In this document: positions 24,699-34,200 of the stretch, one piece after another
How the letters are laid out: every line of letters begins with the position of its first letter
Numbering within the stretch: position 1 is the stretch's first letter
Assembly: GCA_965285935.1 (NCBI GenBank)
Contig: OZ260664.1
Coordinates: 26,846,001-26,910,000 of the forward strand
DNA: 64,000 bases
Direction of reading: 5' to 3'
DNA from: Ophelia neglecta
Taxonomy: Eukaryota
Notes under the pieces: generated by a model
The model's database searches: none
Seen by the model: the letters and a program-made list of their open reading frames with translations, nothing else
What the model was told of the DNA's origin: nothing
Position numbers and translations under genes: made by a program

Positions 24699-25288
24699 CT
24701 ATAGTTGAGATGGCGGCGAATCAGAGTCTAATATTGGTATCTTAAAATATTTGCTGGTGGTGATTGGGTGAAAAAGAATGAGAGTTGTGATCAGGATGAA
24801 CAGAAGGCACAGCCAAAAAAAGAGTCTGTCGCAAACAGCTGCCACGTGGACCCACTCCTTGGCATAATCCGGCTTGTTATTGGTCTTATTTTTACTGTCG
24901 GAAGAGAAATTCCTCTCGAGTGGCTGTAGAGCTGGAGAACTGGCCGAGTGGCGGCGCTCGCGAGGCAGCTGCATGAGTGGGCTTCGTCTATCACGTGACC
25001 GATCCTCGTGAGATTCGTCATGTGAGGAGGAAGCGACCGGTTCGTGCATCATCACAAGTTTATACTTATGTTTGGACCTTGGCCTCTGGCCTCCTTCCGA
25101 GTCCTTCTCCCGGGCGTCTTGCGTTGGCACACAGTTACACATACAAAGTATCCGGGCAAGATAAATAACAAAGACTTTCTTGGCCCAGATTGGCACGGGT
25201 TTTTCCTTCATTCCGTACAGGTTTAGGACGAACACTGTTGCTACCATAGCCAGAGTGGTGATGGCCATCGTACAAGTCAGATAAATTC
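24699..25288 (-). CDS. Receptor last coding exon: M3, intracellular loop, M4
   Basis: Acceptor ttctttacag|GA; GIYLTCTMAITTLAMVATVFVLNLY...PVPIWAK...EWVHVAAVCDRLFFWL; TAG at 24701-24699. Confidence 0.93.
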
Positions 25289-28200
25289 CTGTAAAGAAAA
25301 CACAAACAACACTAATTATTTCTGTTTTTATCATAAAAACACTGAAGTCATGAACACTCCAAAATTGACTTTGGCATATGTATCATTAAGAGAATTATTA
25401 TGATTAAGATGCTAAACGAAAATACAAAATAAATTTGAATGAGCATTTCTGCAAGTGTTTTACCTAGTAAAGGCACATGGTCGGAGGTCCTTGGAATGGT
25501 GTCAGCGACATTAAGTAGGAAAAGTCTAAATGATAGCAGAGCTGCCACTCCAATGTGGACTTTTTGTGTGGGGGTGCAGAAAAAAATGCTTAACAGCACT
25601 GCCGAGGTCATTATTCCCGGCAATATCACATTCATTATGTAAAAGGTGTGCCGCCTCCGTAGCGCAACACTAAAGCCTATGTTGGAGAATCTCTGATTGG
25701 GACAACACTCGAAGTGGAACTCTCGGCGTTTGGTGCTCGTAGAGAGTAACTCCCACTCTCCATTCTTCTCGTAGTTATCTCTGACCGAGTAATACATGAA
25801 GTCAGTTCTGATCTTTAAACGAACGATTTAATATACTGGGTGCCATTTGAAATACGTTTGACAACTAATTTTTTATTGGATAGAAATATATTCAGACAAT
25901 GAGAGAACTCACTTATTGATAGTAGTGCTAGTAGTTGAAAGATTCATTTTGGTCGTGTAGTAGCTCCAGGCGCCGAAAATGAGCTCACACGTTTGCTCAT
26001 CGAACGGGTAGTAGGTGATATCGATGTGACACATTGTCTTAAAAACCCCGCCGGGTTCCCATCGGACCGAGCCGTCCGGGTGTAACACCGCCTGGAACTC
26101 CGTGTACTCCCCATAAATACTCTCAGCCCTAGTGACAGAAATATAAATGTTTGACTTATAGTACAAGATAATTCTAACTAAACTAACCGCGCCAGAATGT
26201 CACAAAATACAAACTACATGTAACCTTACTATAAAACAAAAAACAAAGACAGGCAAAATATGTGCCGTTCGATACAAATAAGAATTGTTTTAAGTAAATC
26301 AGGGTTACATGGCTTCTCGAATTAAGGATCTATAAGGTGAAAACACTGGGACCCGTTGAGCTTACTGCGGAAATTCTTACTTTGTACAAGTGTAAGGGGT
26401 ACTTGATCATGTAATGCATTTTCTTTCGTGAGTAATTACAAGAAATATGCCTTTGATGTGTTAGCAGTGTCCTGTATTACAAGGCCAATTTGTCTTTAAT
26501 TATTTCAATGAGCCATACGCTACACAGTGGAGATAGTGATGACCGTACAGGGAGGTATGTCATGGACATAGGAGAATTTCAAGGTAAATTCATTCCTCTG
26601 ATATGTCTGTAGCAGCACAATATTGCGGAACAGAAGATAATGGCAACTTGTTATTAGTAATCATGGGCAATAACAATATTAACTATCACACTGCTATACG
26701 TCGTATATAGCACCATAGAAAATTGACACGATGACCATTCAGATCAAAAGACCCATTCCTGGCATCTAAACAAACTGTACGGTCATCGCCCCATTTGTAG
26801 TATTCCGCGATATGACCTTGAAAAGAGGTTTTGCTTTATTTAAACAGAAACATTCAATAAGGGACATCATTATCCAAGGTTTCTTACAGAATAGAAACTG
26901 ATTTGATAACTGGAAATGACCTACCAGATGTGTACATTGTCTATAAAACTTATCTGCGGTTATATCGAATGGGCATTTAATTTACCCGTTAATGACAGCG
27001 AATTCCGGCCTCCATATTTTTTTTCCGTCGACGACGATTGTGTCCAGGCTGCTGATTTCTCTGTCCCAGGTAAGACGTTCGTCCTTCCATTCCTAAAGAA
27101 AGTGATAATAAAGGAACATATCTACAGTCTGTCGTATCAATAGATCAATATATTTATATCGAAATAGCTTAACGTTATTGGGATATACAGAGATCATGAC
27201 TTAAAGGCGTATAGGAGTATTGGCGTGAGTATCTAATTGTGGGCAGTGGGAGGTATGACCCACTGTAATAACGGCCATCTATTCGACATTTGGAAGCAAA
27301 ACAATCACGTCACTTGGCTCTTCAATTTCACAATGTGAATAAAATCATACATTCGAATATAAAATTACCCTACACTTAAACCTTAAGCCATTGTAGAATT
27401 TAAAAGTAAACCAATGTCACTCCCTTTTACCTAGCGGTGTTGCATAGCATATATGATAGGCCTACTTTGGCTGAGCGATATGCAACAGAAAGAAAATCAC
27501 AAAAACGGAATTCACGTGGATGACTACTTTTACTCGGACAGCATTATAGAGCAACTTATGGATGTGACGGTACTCCTTAAAAGCATTATTTATAGACCTA
27601 TTGCCCATGAAGCTGCACATATTCTTGGCAGACAGTGAAAGCCTTAATAAATGAATTTAATTTTGAAATCTTTTTTCTGCTCTTATTCCAATAACTTGAT
27701 TTGTGAAAATAAACTTCCCCAGATAAAATGTTATCATCATTCGCGTTGAAGTAAAAAATCGTGCTTCAACCCCTCTGGCATTTCTTAGCTATCTAGAGAC
27801 TAATGTGGCGTGCTAACCAGCACAACTCACCAGACGCGGAGTTTCGGGAACACTAAGGAGCCTCGTCTCTCAGAGTAGCCCACCTCATTCCTGACGCGGC
27901 TTGGGTACAGGCTTAGATATAAATTATTTTGATAGCAGGCCTATAGATGAGTCGGGCAAAAAGTACGTGCATGAAATGTGTCTTGGCTGTCAACCTTCCG
28001 ATGAGCTCACAGGGGTCTTTTTCGAGTAGCAAGGTTACCAGTTATCACTTATTACAATGTTTCATTGACTATCAAAACGGGACCATATCCTGATTTCACC
28101 ATTGCAGGTTTCTGGCAAGGTTTCCGACAATGTTCGTCATAACAAGATAAGAAGTTGTCACAACAACTTGCAAAACCATAAACTACCACCACCTCACCAA

Positions 28201-31200
28201 CGCAGTAAGTCATAGGACAAGAAACGATTCCATTACAAAGTTAATTAGTTATAAGAAAGAAAATTGTAAATTCTCCTTAGCACACATTTGCATCTATTTG
28301 AGAAAACAAACGCAATATATGAAAGCTAATTTTTTCTATTTACTCCCTTGCCTAAACATTATTGCCTGTTTATATAGGCCTTACGTGCCGACTTCTATAA
28401 TTAAACATGTTGACCTGAACTATACAATTTTTAAAATGTGATAGTATAAGAAAGTAACGGATGTGAAAAAATCATCAACATTTAAAATTGTATTTTTAAC
28501 AACAGTTGGCCTATAATTCTTACATGCCTATGTATATCCAAGTAGCATTGTCAGTGCTATAAAGGACATATTATTCAAGTTTTTTATGACTATAAAGAGT
28601 TGGAATCTACGGTAATGGATATCACTCCGAAATCTCTGTGCCAAACTAACAGAACAGAATGAAGGGACACATCGAAAAAGGTGTTAACGTTTTTAATGTA
28701 AATATATACGATGGCATACGCTGAAAAATTATGCGAAAACACCAGAAAACAAGCTGTTAACAATAATTGCCCTGCCACAGTCCATGCAGGGGCTCTTATA
28801 CAGCCAGTCTAAATTACCTAGTATTTATAAAAAATACTTTTAAGTATTCATTTTCCAATGTGCATCATGGTTTATTCTAAGCTGACAGACAGTGGCATTT
28901 TCATTTTATTGACCGGCAAACATTGATCCTTCTCAAAGTATGTTGAACAACATGTAATGTTTATTCTATCTGGGGCCTAAAACCTAAAAGTGCTCGGGGA
29001 ACAGTATAATCTATTGTAAATATGTGCATTCATCAAGCCCTCCCATTTCATCCGTCTAGACAGAGTGATATAAACATGCAAATTAAATGGGTAAAGAACA
29101 GAGATTGCAGTAGTTTAACCTCAGGCAGTTTTACTATAAAATGCAATATCTGATATTTAACGAAATCGTTTAAGTTAAGTATGAAGCACTAGTTAGTATT
29201 AGTTCAAGCATTAGTAGACGGTGCTGTTGTATGTCGTCTGCTGCTTCTTTTCAGCTCTTCAAAGCAGCTTGATAAACAATGAAAAACGGGATTGGACAAC
29301 CGCAGACAAAGCACAATCAAGACTTTTTCATTGAGGGTGTTCGAAATCACGAGGAACCAGCAGCTAATCAAGGGATTGGGCTGATGTTGAAATATGTTCG
29401 CAAAAACAAAATACACTTAAGTTCATAGCATTTATAATACATAACCAGTAACCCCCTGGTGATGTTTAGCACAAATAACGACAGCATTCGAGTGGATTTT
29501 CATGCGTGTATTGAACAAATTTGCATAAGGACTTTAAACCTGGCGATATCGTCTCTGTTGCTCTCATTGATTTTGGATTATGGGACTTCCCCTCATGTTT
29601 ACGAAAACCATACAAGTCAAGTATCTCAAAGTCTGGTAATTGTACTCGGAAAATACACTGGAGGAATTGATGGTTAGTCCCAACAGCTGTGTCATTCTAT
29701 AGCCGCTCACTGTTCAGATTGGCTATCAGTCCCGCGGGTCATTTTTTTTATTATCGGAGCCACATCTATATTGTGTGTTATTAAAAACAAACAATCCTAG
29801 CTGGATAAAAATCGAAATTCCTGACATACTCGATACGTCAATATCACTGTTATCTATTTTAAACCTAATAACAACTGAGCTATCGGGATATTATATGAAC
29901 ACGTTCTCTTTTACATTAACTTCGATTTAGTTGTTTTCAAAACGTACAGTTTTCCAAATGTGTGCATCGAACAATCGATTCAAGATATATAAACATGGGC
30001 ATGCATGTCCCTTAATAATGGTTTGCCTAGAATTCGTCGATCCCACTGCAAGCGGCAAAGGAAGGCGTTGGGGGGGGGGGGGGCTTTTTGTGAATTGTTC
30101 AATGAAATTTCCCTAGCACGAGTAGAAATTTTGTCAGAAAGGAAACCAAATACGATTAAAAATAGGTTTAGTCCTATCAGTTTATCCAGTAATGCAAATT
30201 ATATAATTATGATTCATTGTCTTTGGCATTGACATATGAATTCTTAATATAGTGCATTTAGTATCTTATTTGCAAATGAAATTATAATGGAATTGACTAG
30301 GTCTAAGTTAGTACTTTTCTATTCCAGTTAAGGCACACGGTCGGATGAATTTGCAATAACGTCATTGATATAAAAAAGGCGAAGTTTAGACGATAACAGA
30401 GCTGCGATCTTATCACATTCTGTGTCCACATAGGCCTACGTTGTTTAGACGATAACAGAGCTGCGATCTTATCACATTCTGTGTCCACATAGGCCTACGT
30501 TGTTTAGACGATAACAGAGCTGCGATCATATTAGAAATGTTATCATTGTTTCCGCGACAAAAATGTAAACTGTCTCGCGCGCCTCCGGTGACGCAAGAGT
30601 AATGTTACTGTCTGCTGGGTAGGTGTAGGCAAGCACATGTTAAATTGTCTGTGTTCGGATTATGATCTCTATTTGTTTTCAGTAACAGTTCAATATCTTG
30701 GTAGTTCTGTGAAATGATCTATTATCACAAAAGGTACTCTCTTGCTGGCAAGGATTATACGTAATTCGTGCTAGTTGGTTAGCACACTATATTATCGAGC
30801 ACACATGTTTACATAGCTGATAGGTAAAGCCAAGGATGCACAGCATGCGTGCATCACGTGACGGGGCTAAATGCCTCCTGAGTTATTCATGGACATAGTT
30901 TATCATATTTATCTATTCCTGGTCCAGTCATTGAGGAAAGTACATACCATTATCAAAAGGCCGGTAGAAGTAAGAATCTGGCTCCGCACATTCTAAAATG
31001 ATAAAAATTTGGAAGTTGTTTAATAAGACAATCTTAGAGTACAAACTCCATATTGACAACATTAGTACATACATAAATAATAATTACACAATGCTGCAGA
31101 TTTCAAGAATATATATCAAAATTTAGACGTCTTCCAATACATTGTCACCTTAATCATGAAATATTTACTGAAGAGTATTCAGCAAGATGACGTTACAATA

Positions 31201-34200
31201 ATGATCCCACTTACCAATTCTTGTAAAAGGAGCAGAGAAAACTGTAGATTGACTTGAACTGTCTTCGATGAGTTGAGAACAGGCCTGGCCGACGGATTGT
31301 AGTCCTGAAACAAGTACTCGAGCAACTTCTCTTCGTCCGACTGTACCTTGTACGTTAAGCTAATAGCTCCTGAAATTAAAATCGAACTTATATAAGCAAT
31401 TGGGTGAAGTCTTGTAAAATCGCACATCCGGCATATAAACTGCGCAGTTATTGGGCTTCTTCCGCGCTTTTTTTAAAGGAAGGGCCTTTAAACCAAAGTA
31501 CCCGACTTTATCCTACTTGAATATAGTCCCTAACTTACTCACCTGCTTTGTCAAGACGCCATTTTAATTTTAATCTATACTCATATTGGATCATTATAGC
31601 ATCTACCCTGGATAGGCTGAGGGTACTTGGTCCACATAGGGCTGCTTTTGCCCGCAAGATTAGAATTAACTGTGTTTAAACCAGGATCGCTAGTCCAACT
31701 TGTTTTAGCGTACGTTTCAATGTTTCTGGTTTAACCATTGTTCTGATTTATCATGATTATTCTTGTTAGGAAGCCGAATGCCAAAAACTTGTGTATGTTG
31801 GTGAACCCACCGCTGATTCCGGGCCAAACTACAAAACCATTCTTTCTAGGAATAACATGTGTAAGTGTCGATCGGTTCTACCAATGTAGTAACTCTATAA
31901 GGCGTGGTCTAATATATATATTTCTAAATCCTATAGTATATAGATATACAACGTGGATCCCCAGCCCTCCGACTAGAAGTTCACATACTAACTTTTTCTA
32001 AAGAAGAGGTTTGGTAATTGTGTGCACTTGTTGTTCAACATCTACAAGATAACTTTTTTCCGTTTTCAGGTTTCTTTACCACGTTATTGACATTTCACTG
32101 ATTGCTCCGAGTGTTCAACACCTGCGTCGAATAAATGTGGGGTATACAAACAAACCCGGTTGTTGTTCAAAGAGTCTTTGTCTTAATGTATTGCAGTGAC
32201 TTGCCCATCTAGGACAGCCGGAAACGATAGGGGTCTGCTGTCAGGGGGGGGGGGGGGGGCTCCTAGTCATCTCAGCGCTCTGCGATTTTTAAACAAGAAA
32301 GTTTCTATTGGCAATTCTCTGCCAATTAGAAAAAAAAGAGTTTAGAATGATTGATGGGCAGTAAAGACAACTTATTTTTTCATTACAGTGTAGATGATAA
32401 TCATTTGTCCACTTTGGTACGATATATAATGTAGGGTAAAATTATAATTAAATACTTAAAGTAATTTATCTTAGGTAATTATTCAAGGGAAGCGCTTATA
32501 TTATGAAGGCCTTCTTCTATATATGAAAAATATATAATACATTTGAAGCAGGTTTTTGGCTCAAAAAGGGAACACTGCTGGGATATATTTTCCATTCATT
32601 TCTGAGAAAGGGGATAGGCCTATCATTTCAACGCCTCTCTGTATGTGTGAAATGTGTTCACGTTGTTTTGAAAATGCAAATGGAAACGGGAGTACCACCT
32701 CGAAAAAAACGGCTACGACAGGCTAGACCCTTCCCAAAGTATAAATGATAGATTGGTATTTAATACAAATGTCAATGAAAGTAAACGCTTTTGTTTTTTC
32801 GAGGCACCAGTCTATAGTTGCATTTGTTGAAAATGGACAACATAAAATATAAACGACCTCATGTTTTGATAAAAAATATTTCCATGGATGGCAGCTGGTC
32901 AGAGCTTACGAGATATTCATGTGCCGAAGAGACTATAACAATCTGTTAAATGATCTAAATCCGAAAGCGATGGAGAAGTGCACAATTAACACATGCACCC
33001 CAAAGGGGTAGAAATAGCGCGATTCATGTGTCGGCATCCATGCAGAAGCTTGTTCTGCTGGATCTGCATTCGTCGCAAGTATGTTAATGACCCAGGCTTC
33101 CAACACCTTCTCATACGATAAGAAACAACCGATATGGGCCCTGAACGATACAGTGATAAATTACCAGGCCTGTTGAAACATTTAATAATAAACTGGTGAC
33201 CTACATCAAAGAAAATTACTCAGCGTCTAATTTTCCGGGCGGGAATATTTATCTATACATTAAATGTTATAATTTAGAACACACTTTGGAATGCTTGTAG
33301 AATTTTCTTCTCGAGGAACTACATTAGCAAAGGTTTGCTTGAAATAGATTAATGCAGAAAAAATAAAAATGTAATGCCATCTGAATCATTTCAGGGATGA
33401 GTAAGTTTTCGAGGACCAATCAAATGTATTATTTTTATACAGTGAACCCAGATATAAAACATATATAAGTTGGTACATCTTATACCAGTCCCTGGTATAA
33501 GATATGACACATGGGATACCGTATGGGCCAGTGATGAACAGTTCCTGGTAGAAGATATCACTCTTGGGATTCCGTGTGTGTCTGTGATGAACAGTCCCTG
33601 GTTTAAGATATGACACTAGGGATTCCGTATGGGCCTGTGATGAACAGTTCCTGGTAAAAGATATGACATTTGGGATACGGTATGGGTCTGTGAAGAACAG
33701 TTCCTGGAAGAAGATATCACTATTGGGATTCCGTGTGTGTCTGTGATGAACAGTCCCTGGTATGAGATATGACACTAGGGATTCCGTATGGGCCTGTGAT
33801 GAACAGTCCCTGGTAGAAGATATGACACTTAGGATACGGTATGGGTCTGTGAAGAACAATTCATGGTATAAGATATGACACTAGTGATTCCGTATGGGCC
33901 TGTGATGAACCGTTCCTGGTATATTTGGACTGGCTTAATGGACTCTTCTTGCCAGCTGATTTTAGTTGTCTATACAATATTGCTTTCAAATAATTTTAAT
34001 ATTGTTATAAAATCCATTTTTCCCACTTTTGTACCAATTATTAGTTCACAAAATCTAAGAAACAATCACCATTTCACCAAATGGTAACTCAAATGGATTT
34101 TTGCGAACTTTTCTTTTGAACTGCAGTTCATTCAATCTATTATTTTCTTACAGAAGCGGTGAAATAATATGGCCAACAAACGTATTTTCTACATAAATAT

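Follow-up and report, generated by a model that had tools for sequence, protein, structure and literature searches.

A nicotinic-type receptor subfamily of annelids and an orthonectid with a shortened M1-M2 linker, glutamine at -1' and a mid-helix arginine

Which ions would pass through a nicotinic-type channel whose pore carries neither the cationic nor the anionic selectivity filter? The question is raised by a gene of Ophelia neglecta, found in a stretch of 64,000 nucleotides (hereafter the window; contig OZ260664.1 of assembly GCA_965285935.1, positions 26,846,001 to 26,910,000 of the forward strand; positions below count from its first letter). The gene lies on the minus strand (31427-24699), consists of six exons totalling 1488 nt and 495 codons with an intact frame, and encodes a nicotinic-type Cys-loop subunit; no further receptor gene was found in the window. 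Its pore is encoded by exon 5, in which the reverse complement of 25501-25584 translates as FFCTPTQKVHIGVAALLSFRLFLLNVAD. When exon 5 was compared with all PDB chains using phmmer, 91 distinct sequences were matched, headed by chains of the human alpha7 receptor (E 2.5e-20), which we used to number the following pore positions.

25501 to 25584, minus strand: end of M1, linker and M2 up to 20' (translation and alignment to alpha7)
25561 to 25572, minus strand: filter Pro(-3') Thr(-2') Gln(-1') Lys(0'), replacing the canonical Gly-Glu-Lys preceded by two extra residues (alignment to alpha7)
25566 to 25564, minus strand: Gln -1' (codon CAA)
25563 to 25561, minus strand: Lys 0' (codon reading)
25555 to 25557, minus strand: His 2' (codon CAC)
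25525 to 25527, minus strand: Arg 12' (codon AGA)
25510 to 25512, minus strand: Asn 17' (alignment to alpha7)

The phmmer alignment places a two-residue gap in the M1-M2 linker relative to alpha7 and pairs Gln with Glu at -1', His with Ser at 2', Ala with Thr at 6', Arg with Thr at 12' and Asn with Leu at 17'; position 20' is Asp, and the net charge from -5' to 24' is +2. Cationic members of the family (nicotinic and 5-HT3 types) are marked by a Gly-Glu-Lys/Arg filter with Glu at -1', and anionic members (GABA-A, Gly, GluCl, AChRB and ACC) by Pro(-2')-Ala(-1')-Arg/Lys(0'), according to passages of two recent accounts (bioRxiv 10.1101/2025.04.02.646353; PMC9874803). The window gene, with Gln at -1' in a filter that reads Pro(-3')-Thr-Gln-Lys, matches neither. 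A preliminary description of the locus, made from the letters alone, had reported a linker two residues shorter than the canonical one, Gln at -1', His at 2', Ala at 6' and Arg at 12', and a stretch that fits neither type of filter; the translation, the codons, the alpha7 alignment and the comparison with the two motifs bear out each of these observations. That description also offered several plausible functional readings, namely altered or anion selectivity, sensing of pH or Zn2+ by a ring of 2' His, or an obligate accessory subunit. The results below go beyond it: they reveal an entire conserved clade, add Asn 17' and the missing -4' acid to its signature, and show His-type and Gln-type subunits side by side within genomes.

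The same pore recurs in a large set of related proteins. Searches were run with separate exons of the window gene or with database orthologues. An exhaustive HMMER search of 1.84 billion representatives with the exon as query returned 3402 matches at E<=0.001 (16 at E<=1e-30), and word-index searches returned 59 matches at E<=1e-20 with the Dimorphilus orthologue and 112 at E<=1e-30 with a 21-sequence profile. Of the 290 proteins gathered, 203 allowed the stretch between the M1 proline and 24' to be parsed; 87 fragments lacking M1 or M2 were left out of the counts. The distance between the M1 proline and 0' is 19 residues in 88 of the 203 proteins, 21 in 114 (the canonical length) and 25 in one. 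The clade is defined by a distance of 19 together with Gln -1', Lys 0', Leu 9', Arg 12' and Asn 17', all of which the window gene has.

Nearly every ring that lines the canonical pore is altered in the clade. Position -1' is Gln in 85/88 clade proteins, compared with Glu in 113/114 canonical ones, and the acidic residue at -4' (Asp or Glu in 99/114 canonical proteins) is present in 0/88, where Thr, Pro or Val stands instead. The filter retains Lys 0' in all 88 and has Pro at -3' in 53 of 56; the Pro-Ala-Lys/Arg filter occurs in none of the 88 clade proteins (56 and 32 strings examined). At 2', Gln (58/88) or His (29/88), with a single Pro, replaces the Ser, Thr or Ala of 112/114 canonical proteins, and at 6' Val (60/88) or Ala (28/88) replaces Thr or Ser (108/114). 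Leu 9' is invariant (88/88). Farther out, 12' is Arg in 83 clade proteins and Lys in one, as opposed to Thr or Ser in 100/114 and Arg in 0/114 canonical proteins; 17' is Asn in 83/88 versus 1/114, and 24' is Lys or Arg in 82/88. The outer position 20' is more variable (Asp 63, Gly 15, Ala 4, Glu 2, Lys 2, Asn 1 and Arg 1; n=88) than in canonical proteins, where it is Glu or Asp in 109/114. The mean net charge from -5' to 24' is +2.07 in the clade (n=88) and -1.66 in canonical proteins (n=114), a swing from negative to positive of about four charges per subunit. M2 is near-invariant within the clade, and together with the filter forms the best-conserved stretch of the protein. A few proteins depart from the clade pattern: P0017 and P0159 have Met at 12' and a four-residue deletion near 20', and P0169 has Pro at both -1' and 2'.

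The residue at 2' divides the clade into two types that differ at several further positions. The combination of 2' His, 6' Ala and 13' Leu is found in 25 of the 29 His-type proteins, and that of 2' Gln, 6' Val, 7' Val and 13' Ile in 56 of the 58 Gln-type proteins. Two further residues are clade-specific: a Thr in M1 (22/22 clade rows, compared with Leu or Ile in 20/20 outgroup rows) and a His in the M2-M3 loop (19/22 rows), which is not among the three commonest residues of the outgroup.

In the genome of O. neglecta itself, the exon matches 69 places at E<=1e-5, 30 of which were read. Five of the 30 loci, including the window gene, have the short linker, Gln-Lys and Arg 12'; Glu at -1' is found in each of the remaining 25 nicotinic-type loci, and Arg at 12' in none of them. 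The four paralogues (64-70% identical) are of the Gln type, with Gln 2' and Val 6'/7', so that among the loci read the window gene is the sole predicted His-type member of the subfamily in its genome. Recurrence of this pore in 88 related proteins and in four more genes of the same genome is, as judged from these counts, far beyond chance. Three of the paralogues share one chromosome. Two of these three, L002 and L004 (G000:C7:60667387-60667707 and 60629721-60630038), are separated by 38 kb on the window's chromosome, have the same orientation and probably represent a tandem duplication.

Named clade members came from Capitella teleta, Helobdella robusta, Dimorphilus gyrociliatus, Ridgeia piscesae, Lamellibrachia satsuma, Paralvinella palmiformis and the orthonectid Intoshia linei; this restriction to annelids and Intoshia refers to named members from the two word-index searches and the one exhaustive search. 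The canonical filter is found in the next named matches, which show 30-36% identity and belong to a chiton, Owenia, Octopus, bivalves, a fluke, sea urchins, barnacles and fish. We also computed a quick maximum-likelihood tree from 43 rows. The tree, in which the window gene is represented by exon 5 alone and branches carry only Shimodaira-Hasegawa-like approximate likelihood-ratio test (SH-aLRT) supports, unites 22 clade proteins and the window exon in one group (SH-aLRT 100); five rows, among them Intoshia P0014, have long branches. Within this group, 12 rows form a His-type subgroup (support 99) that contains the window exon and proteins of Capitella, Helobdella, Dimorphilus and Intoshia. 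Both types coexist in the genome of O. neglecta (one His and four Gln), and in Capitella, Helobdella, Dimorphilus and Intoshia—that is, in every genome with a named or located His type. Four full-length orthologues (477-593 amino acids) are encoded on contigs of 1757-2741 nt, which are probably transcripts because they are too short for such an intron-bearing gene. As a separate observation, Intoshia P0014 and P0174 both carry the clade's deletion of two linker residues and are placed within the annelid clade, on long branches and each beside a Dimorphilus protein. The deletion fits a position of orthonectids within Annelida, where, according to passages of a phylogenomic study, Intoshia has been placed (PMC6543705).

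The ligand-binding side is also modified. The vicinal Cys-Cys of loop C, the mark of alpha-type subunits, occurs both in the window gene and in its Capitella orthologue; it is missing in the Dimorphilus, Helobdella and Intoshia orthologues (P0154, P0163 and P0014, compared with exon 5) despite near-identical pores. The loop B Trp is invariant in the clade alignment. At the loop A position (column 110 of P0162), Ile occupies 16/18 clade rows where the outgroup has Tyr (16/20 rows). When orthologue P0154 is aligned to alpha4, Leu stands opposite the loop D Trp, and the positions of the loop C Tyr pair are Phe. The aromatic box for acetylcholine, as read from these alignments, is incomplete in the window gene and in the clade, the loop A Tyr and the loop D Trp being replaced. 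Because these two residues and Glu -1' are missing, the window gene would not encode a canonical acetylcholine-binding, cation-selective subunit.

We propose that the subfamily is old (Annelida including Orthonectida) and that its ion pathway was rebuilt once and thereafter frozen. The sequences show that the M1-M2 linker has lost two residues and that both inner acidic rings (-4' and -1') have disappeared; the polar 2' and 6' rings have become His/Gln and Ala/Val, and Arg 12', Asn 17' and Lys/Arg 24' have been gained. The Glu ring at -1' sets the negative potential that drives cation conduction. A pentamer made only of clade subunits would have neither this ring nor the one at -4', and its wall would be positive; a classical cation channel would therefore not be expected. 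Co-assembly of His and Gln types is suggested because both are kept in every genome with a named His type. The conservation of the stretch and the reversal of its charge favour altered selectivity, and the reading that we prefer, which seems to us about evenly balanced between being right and wrong, is that the rebuilt pore is that of a channel other than the classical cation-selective nicotinic one—most likely anion-permeable, or weakly selective with low conductance—in which His and Gln types co-assemble. If anionic, the channel would have arrived there by a route other than the Pro-Ala-Lys/Arg filter of all known anionic relatives.

Published mutants bear on this reading from both sides. 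A single Glu at -1' turns the glycine receptor cationic, as described in part of PMC2233820, and replacement of all five -1' Glu of alpha7 by Gln drastically cuts cation conductance, a change described in passages of PMC2217203 (citing Corringer 1999) as necessary and not sufficient for anion selectivity. Several points weigh against altered selectivity. The Glu-to-Gln ring by itself did not reverse the selectivity of alpha7, and the wild-type Lys ring at 0' hardly affects permeant ions (both from passages of PMC2217203). The Pro(-2')-Ala(-1') pair that marks every known anionic relative is absent from the clade, which keeps an acidic 20' in 65/88 proteins (Asp 63, Glu 2). Helical periodicity would put 12' at the border of the stripe that lines the pore, and Arg 12' may face the neighbouring subunit, not the lumen; the clade-specific Thr of M1 is a candidate for its partner there. 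The evidence for co-assembly of His and Gln types, finally, consists of their co-occurrence alone.

Several known channels can be set beside the clade. The window gene has in common with alpha7 and with alpha9-alpha10-like subunits the predicted fold and domain order, a Cys-loop, a Cys pair in loop C, Leu at 9' and an M2-M3 loop, and in the tree the canonical alpha10-like group of lophotrochozoans stands just outside the branch made up of the clade and its nearest sisters. The clade differs from these subunits in the linker (two residues shorter), in the absence of the -4' and -1' acids, in 2' His/Gln, 6' Ala/Val, 12' Arg and 17' Asn, and in the replaced loop A Tyr and loop D Trp. The AChRB and ACC subunits (Lymnaea AChRB, Octopus AChRB1 and Schistosoma ACCs) likewise belong to the nicotinic branch and lack Glu -1', and show that this branch can switch charge selectivity (passages of bioRxiv 10.1101/2025.04.02.646353 and PMC9874803). 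Their filter is Pro-Ala-Lys/Arg and they are known from molluscs, flatworms and annelids, whereas the clade has Pro-x-Gln-Lys, a shortened linker and a mid-helix Arg, is found only in annelids and Intoshia, and is known from sequence. Membership of the clade in the anionic AChRB family was ruled out by the absence of Pro-Ala-Lys. Changes of ligand and of charge selectivity within the nicotinic branch are already recorded, in the partial accounts consulted, for DopC1 and AChRB1, and an odd filter has a precedent in the Val-Lys-Lys of one schistosome gene (a passage of PMC9874803).

The closest laboratory parallel is provided by engineered alpha7 mutants, in which an all-Gln or neutral -1' together with an altered M1-M2 loop shifted alpha7 away from cationic and towards anionic behaviour (passages of PMC2217203 and PMC10338036, citing Galzi 1992 and Corringer 1999). 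The clade differs from them in that its loop is shortened, its 13' is Leu or Ile and an Arg is added at 12'. In the engineered channels, the loop was reportedly lengthened by a Pro and 13' made polar. Among natural proteins, Alpo4 of Alvinella pompejana (PDB 8bx5 and others) is also an annelid orphan of the nicotinic branch; it differs from the clade in keeping Glu -1', Thr 2' and Asp 20', and has been judged cationic (passages of PMC10338036). Kinship with Alpo4 was rejected, as it is no nearer to the clade than human subunits are (E 1.1e-49, compared with 2.3e-66 for alpha4).

A more specific proposal may be put forward tentatively, as possible rather than probable: that the clade is a private annelid and orthonectid class of channel, either anion-selective or controlled by protons or metals, by means of the short linker, the all-Gln -1' ring and a mid-pore Arg ring, and that it would function as an obligate heteromer of 2'-His and 2'-Gln subunits gated by something other than acetylcholine.

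The main rival to altered selectivity is an accessory role, in which clade members would join canonical Gly-Glu-Lys pentamers and tune conductance, Ca2+ permeability or gating while the channel stays cation-selective. We consider this somewhat unlikely, although it has a natural precedent: the muscle-type receptor is a working nicotinic receptor whose -1' ring is made up by four Glu residues plus one Gln (a passage of PMC2217203). There the Gln is contributed by one subunit of five with an otherwise canonical M2, whereas in the clade it is found in nearly all members (85/88) and is accompanied by many other changes of the pore. Partners for an accessory subunit are abundant in the genome (25 of the 30 loci read are canonical), and several orthologues do without the Cys pair of loop C, as non-alpha subunits do. 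However, the entire pore face and the length of the linker differ, which would make symmetric packing with canonical M2 helices less likely, and the five clade genes of this genome are enough for pentamers of their own. The strict co-variation of 2' His/6' Ala/13' Leu against 2' Gln/6' Val/13' Ile also suggests that partners are found within the clade, and in our judgement a near-invariant M2 reflects more constraint than would be expected of a mere modulator.

The His-type subunits suggest a second alternative, a pore controlled by protons or Zn2+ in which a ring of His at 2', the narrowest part of the open channel, makes conduction or selectivity dependent on pH or metal. In its favour, His 2' is found in 29/88 proteins, the 12 His-type rows of the tree form a branch, and a second clade-specific His is present in the M2-M3 loop (19/22 rows). 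Nevertheless, Gln at 2' in 58/88 proteins with otherwise the same filter means that His cannot explain the design of the clade, and a full ring of five His would never form if the two types co-assemble. As an account of the clade we regard such control as unlikely; a role of 2' His in sensing pH or Zn2+ could apply to the His type only, that is, to 29/88 of the clade.

Less probable still, and in our view decidedly doubtful, is a non-conducting role, in which hydrophobic residues at 6', 9', 13' and 16' may keep the pore dewetted and the protein serves in binding or scaffolding or as an intracellular subunit. Several nicotinic-like orphans of annelids, such as Alpo4, gave no currents with any ligand tried (passages of PMC10338036), and 6' is Val or Ala in 88/88 clade proteins, compared with Thr or Ser in 108/114 canonical ones. 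Conservation argues the other way, since M2 and the filter are the best-conserved parts of the protein, which would be unexpected in a pore that never conducts. The 9' Leu, the Cys-loop and the Pro of the M2-M3 loop, which take part in gating, are also retained.

An assembly error, a pseudogene or a decaying duplicate has a negligible chance of being the explanation and was ruled out by the six exons with open frame and canonical splice sites, the concordant read contigs in which all three coding variants are synonymous, and the orthologues of other annelids, which are 81-82% identical over exon 5. Contigs from three DNA runs of one sample reproduce exon 5; these are the only runs that hold the stretch, and the sample is possibly the assembly's own source, which makes this agreement weak as independent support. 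That the runs are of DNA is shown by their contigs, which continue through the introns. Exons 5 and 6 differ between read contigs and assembly at three positions (25537, 25672 and 25194), each a synonymous third-base change. The preliminary description had allowed that the pore residues might be assembly errors or unconserved and had called for a check in orthologues; the read contigs agree with them and they are conserved across annelids, the latter being the stronger argument against error. In the introns, linked variants were observed at 25311-25361 (three substitutions and a 1-nt deletion) and at 26376-26426 (five substitutions). In each of the three runs the variants are carried by a second contig whose depth is about half, which probably reflects the two haplotypes of a single individual.

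The complete gene was reconstructed exon by exon from the open reading frame (ORF) list, tblastn with orthologues and splice sites, as follows.

31215 to 31427, minus strand: exon 1, start codon, signal-like hydrophobic stretch and beginning of the ligand-binding domain (ORF list; tblastn of orthologues P0162 and P0160; donor GTAAGT after 31215; PF02931 positions 1-39)
30948 to 30992, minus strand: exon 2, 45 nt, loop D region with Leu for the usual Trp (tblastn; AG acceptor; GTATGT donor; alignment of orthologue P0154 to alpha4)
26986 to 27092, minus strand: exon 3, 107 nt, loop A region with Ile for the usual Tyr (tblastn; splice sites)
25913 to 26128, minus strand: exon 4, 216 nt, Cys-loop (two Cys 13 residues apart) and loop B Trp (ORF translation; PF02931, E 7.1e-18; splice sites)
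25464 to 25780, minus strand: exon 5, 317 nt, loop C vicinal Cys-Cys, M1, short M1-M2 linker, M2 and M2-M3 loop, holding the unusual pore (acceptor CAG before 25780)
24699 to 25288, minus strand: exon 6, 590 nt, M3, cytoplasmic loop, M4 and stop codon (ORF; PF02932, E 1.4e-18; tblastn; acceptor)

Every intron is of the GT-AG type with compatible phases. In an exon-by-exon search, the ligand-binding domain PF02931 was recovered on exon 4 with 65.3 bits, above the Pfam cut-off of 26 bits, and below that cut-off on exon 1 (24.4 bits, E 2.3e-5) and exon 5 (17.9 bits, E 0.0022); it is present in the full-length orthologues. The transmembrane domain PF02932 was recovered on exon 6 (68.4 bits, cut-off 28.1, profile positions 60-233), and exon 5 supplies positions 1-59 at a score that by itself is under the cut-off (24 bits, E 5.3e-5), so that the two exons jointly span positions 1-233. 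The Cys-loop translated from exon 4 has 13 residues between its two Cys and a Pro-Phe-Asp core, and within the clade alignment no variation occurs at the Cys, Pro, Phe and Asp positions. Judged by these profile matches and the Cys-loop, the window gene is a member of the Cys-loop superfamily; it belongs to the nicotinic branch.

Two alternative features of the locus were considered and rejected. A longer exon 5 starting from an AG near 25812 was discarded, since the acceptor before 25780 is the only one in frame with the exon 4 donor that also matches the orthologues; the 11 residues upstream of 25780 are intron and aligned to no match in the genome and HMMER searches. A second M2-like piece in intron 2 (30331-30408, tblastn E 0.07-0.28) was attributed to chance, as it sits in a 59-nt tandem repeat. 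This repeat extends over 30384-30560 and comprises a perfectly matching pair of copies plus a third at 61%. Over 26557-26763, within intron 3, read contigs are about threefold deeper (about 83 compared with 27), with many loose ends and short skips, and the segment looks like a copy of an interspersed repeat.

We found no description of the clade or its pore in a literature search to which supplements with large channel trees were external, and no paper mentioning six of the locus tags of its members. The octopus preprint (bioRxiv 10.1101/2025.04.02.646353) has an alignment and a tree of 1197 channels, those of Capitella, Helobdella and Platynereis included; clade members may be present there, uncommented, as well as in the figure supplements of PMC10338036. 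What appears to be new, as predicted from the genes, is a natural and strongly conserved nicotinic pore that combines a short linker, an all-Gln ring and a mid-helix Arg.

The choice that pentameric ligand-gated ion channels make between cations and anions is still debated from two natural types of filter and a few engineered mutants. The clade represents a different natural experiment, held under very strong constraint across annelids and even in the gene-poor parasite Intoshia, and makes directly testable whether a Glu ring at -1' and linker length suffice, and what effect a natural mid-pore Arg has. The shared two-residue deletion is also a rare genomic change linking orthonectids to annelids. 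If the more specific proposal made above holds, the clade would be a third independent solution to charge selectivity in the superfamily, reached by a route unseen in nature or in the laboratory; and should its channels prove to pass anions or to be gated by something other than acetylcholine, the fast signalling of annelid nervous systems would have an unmapped component.

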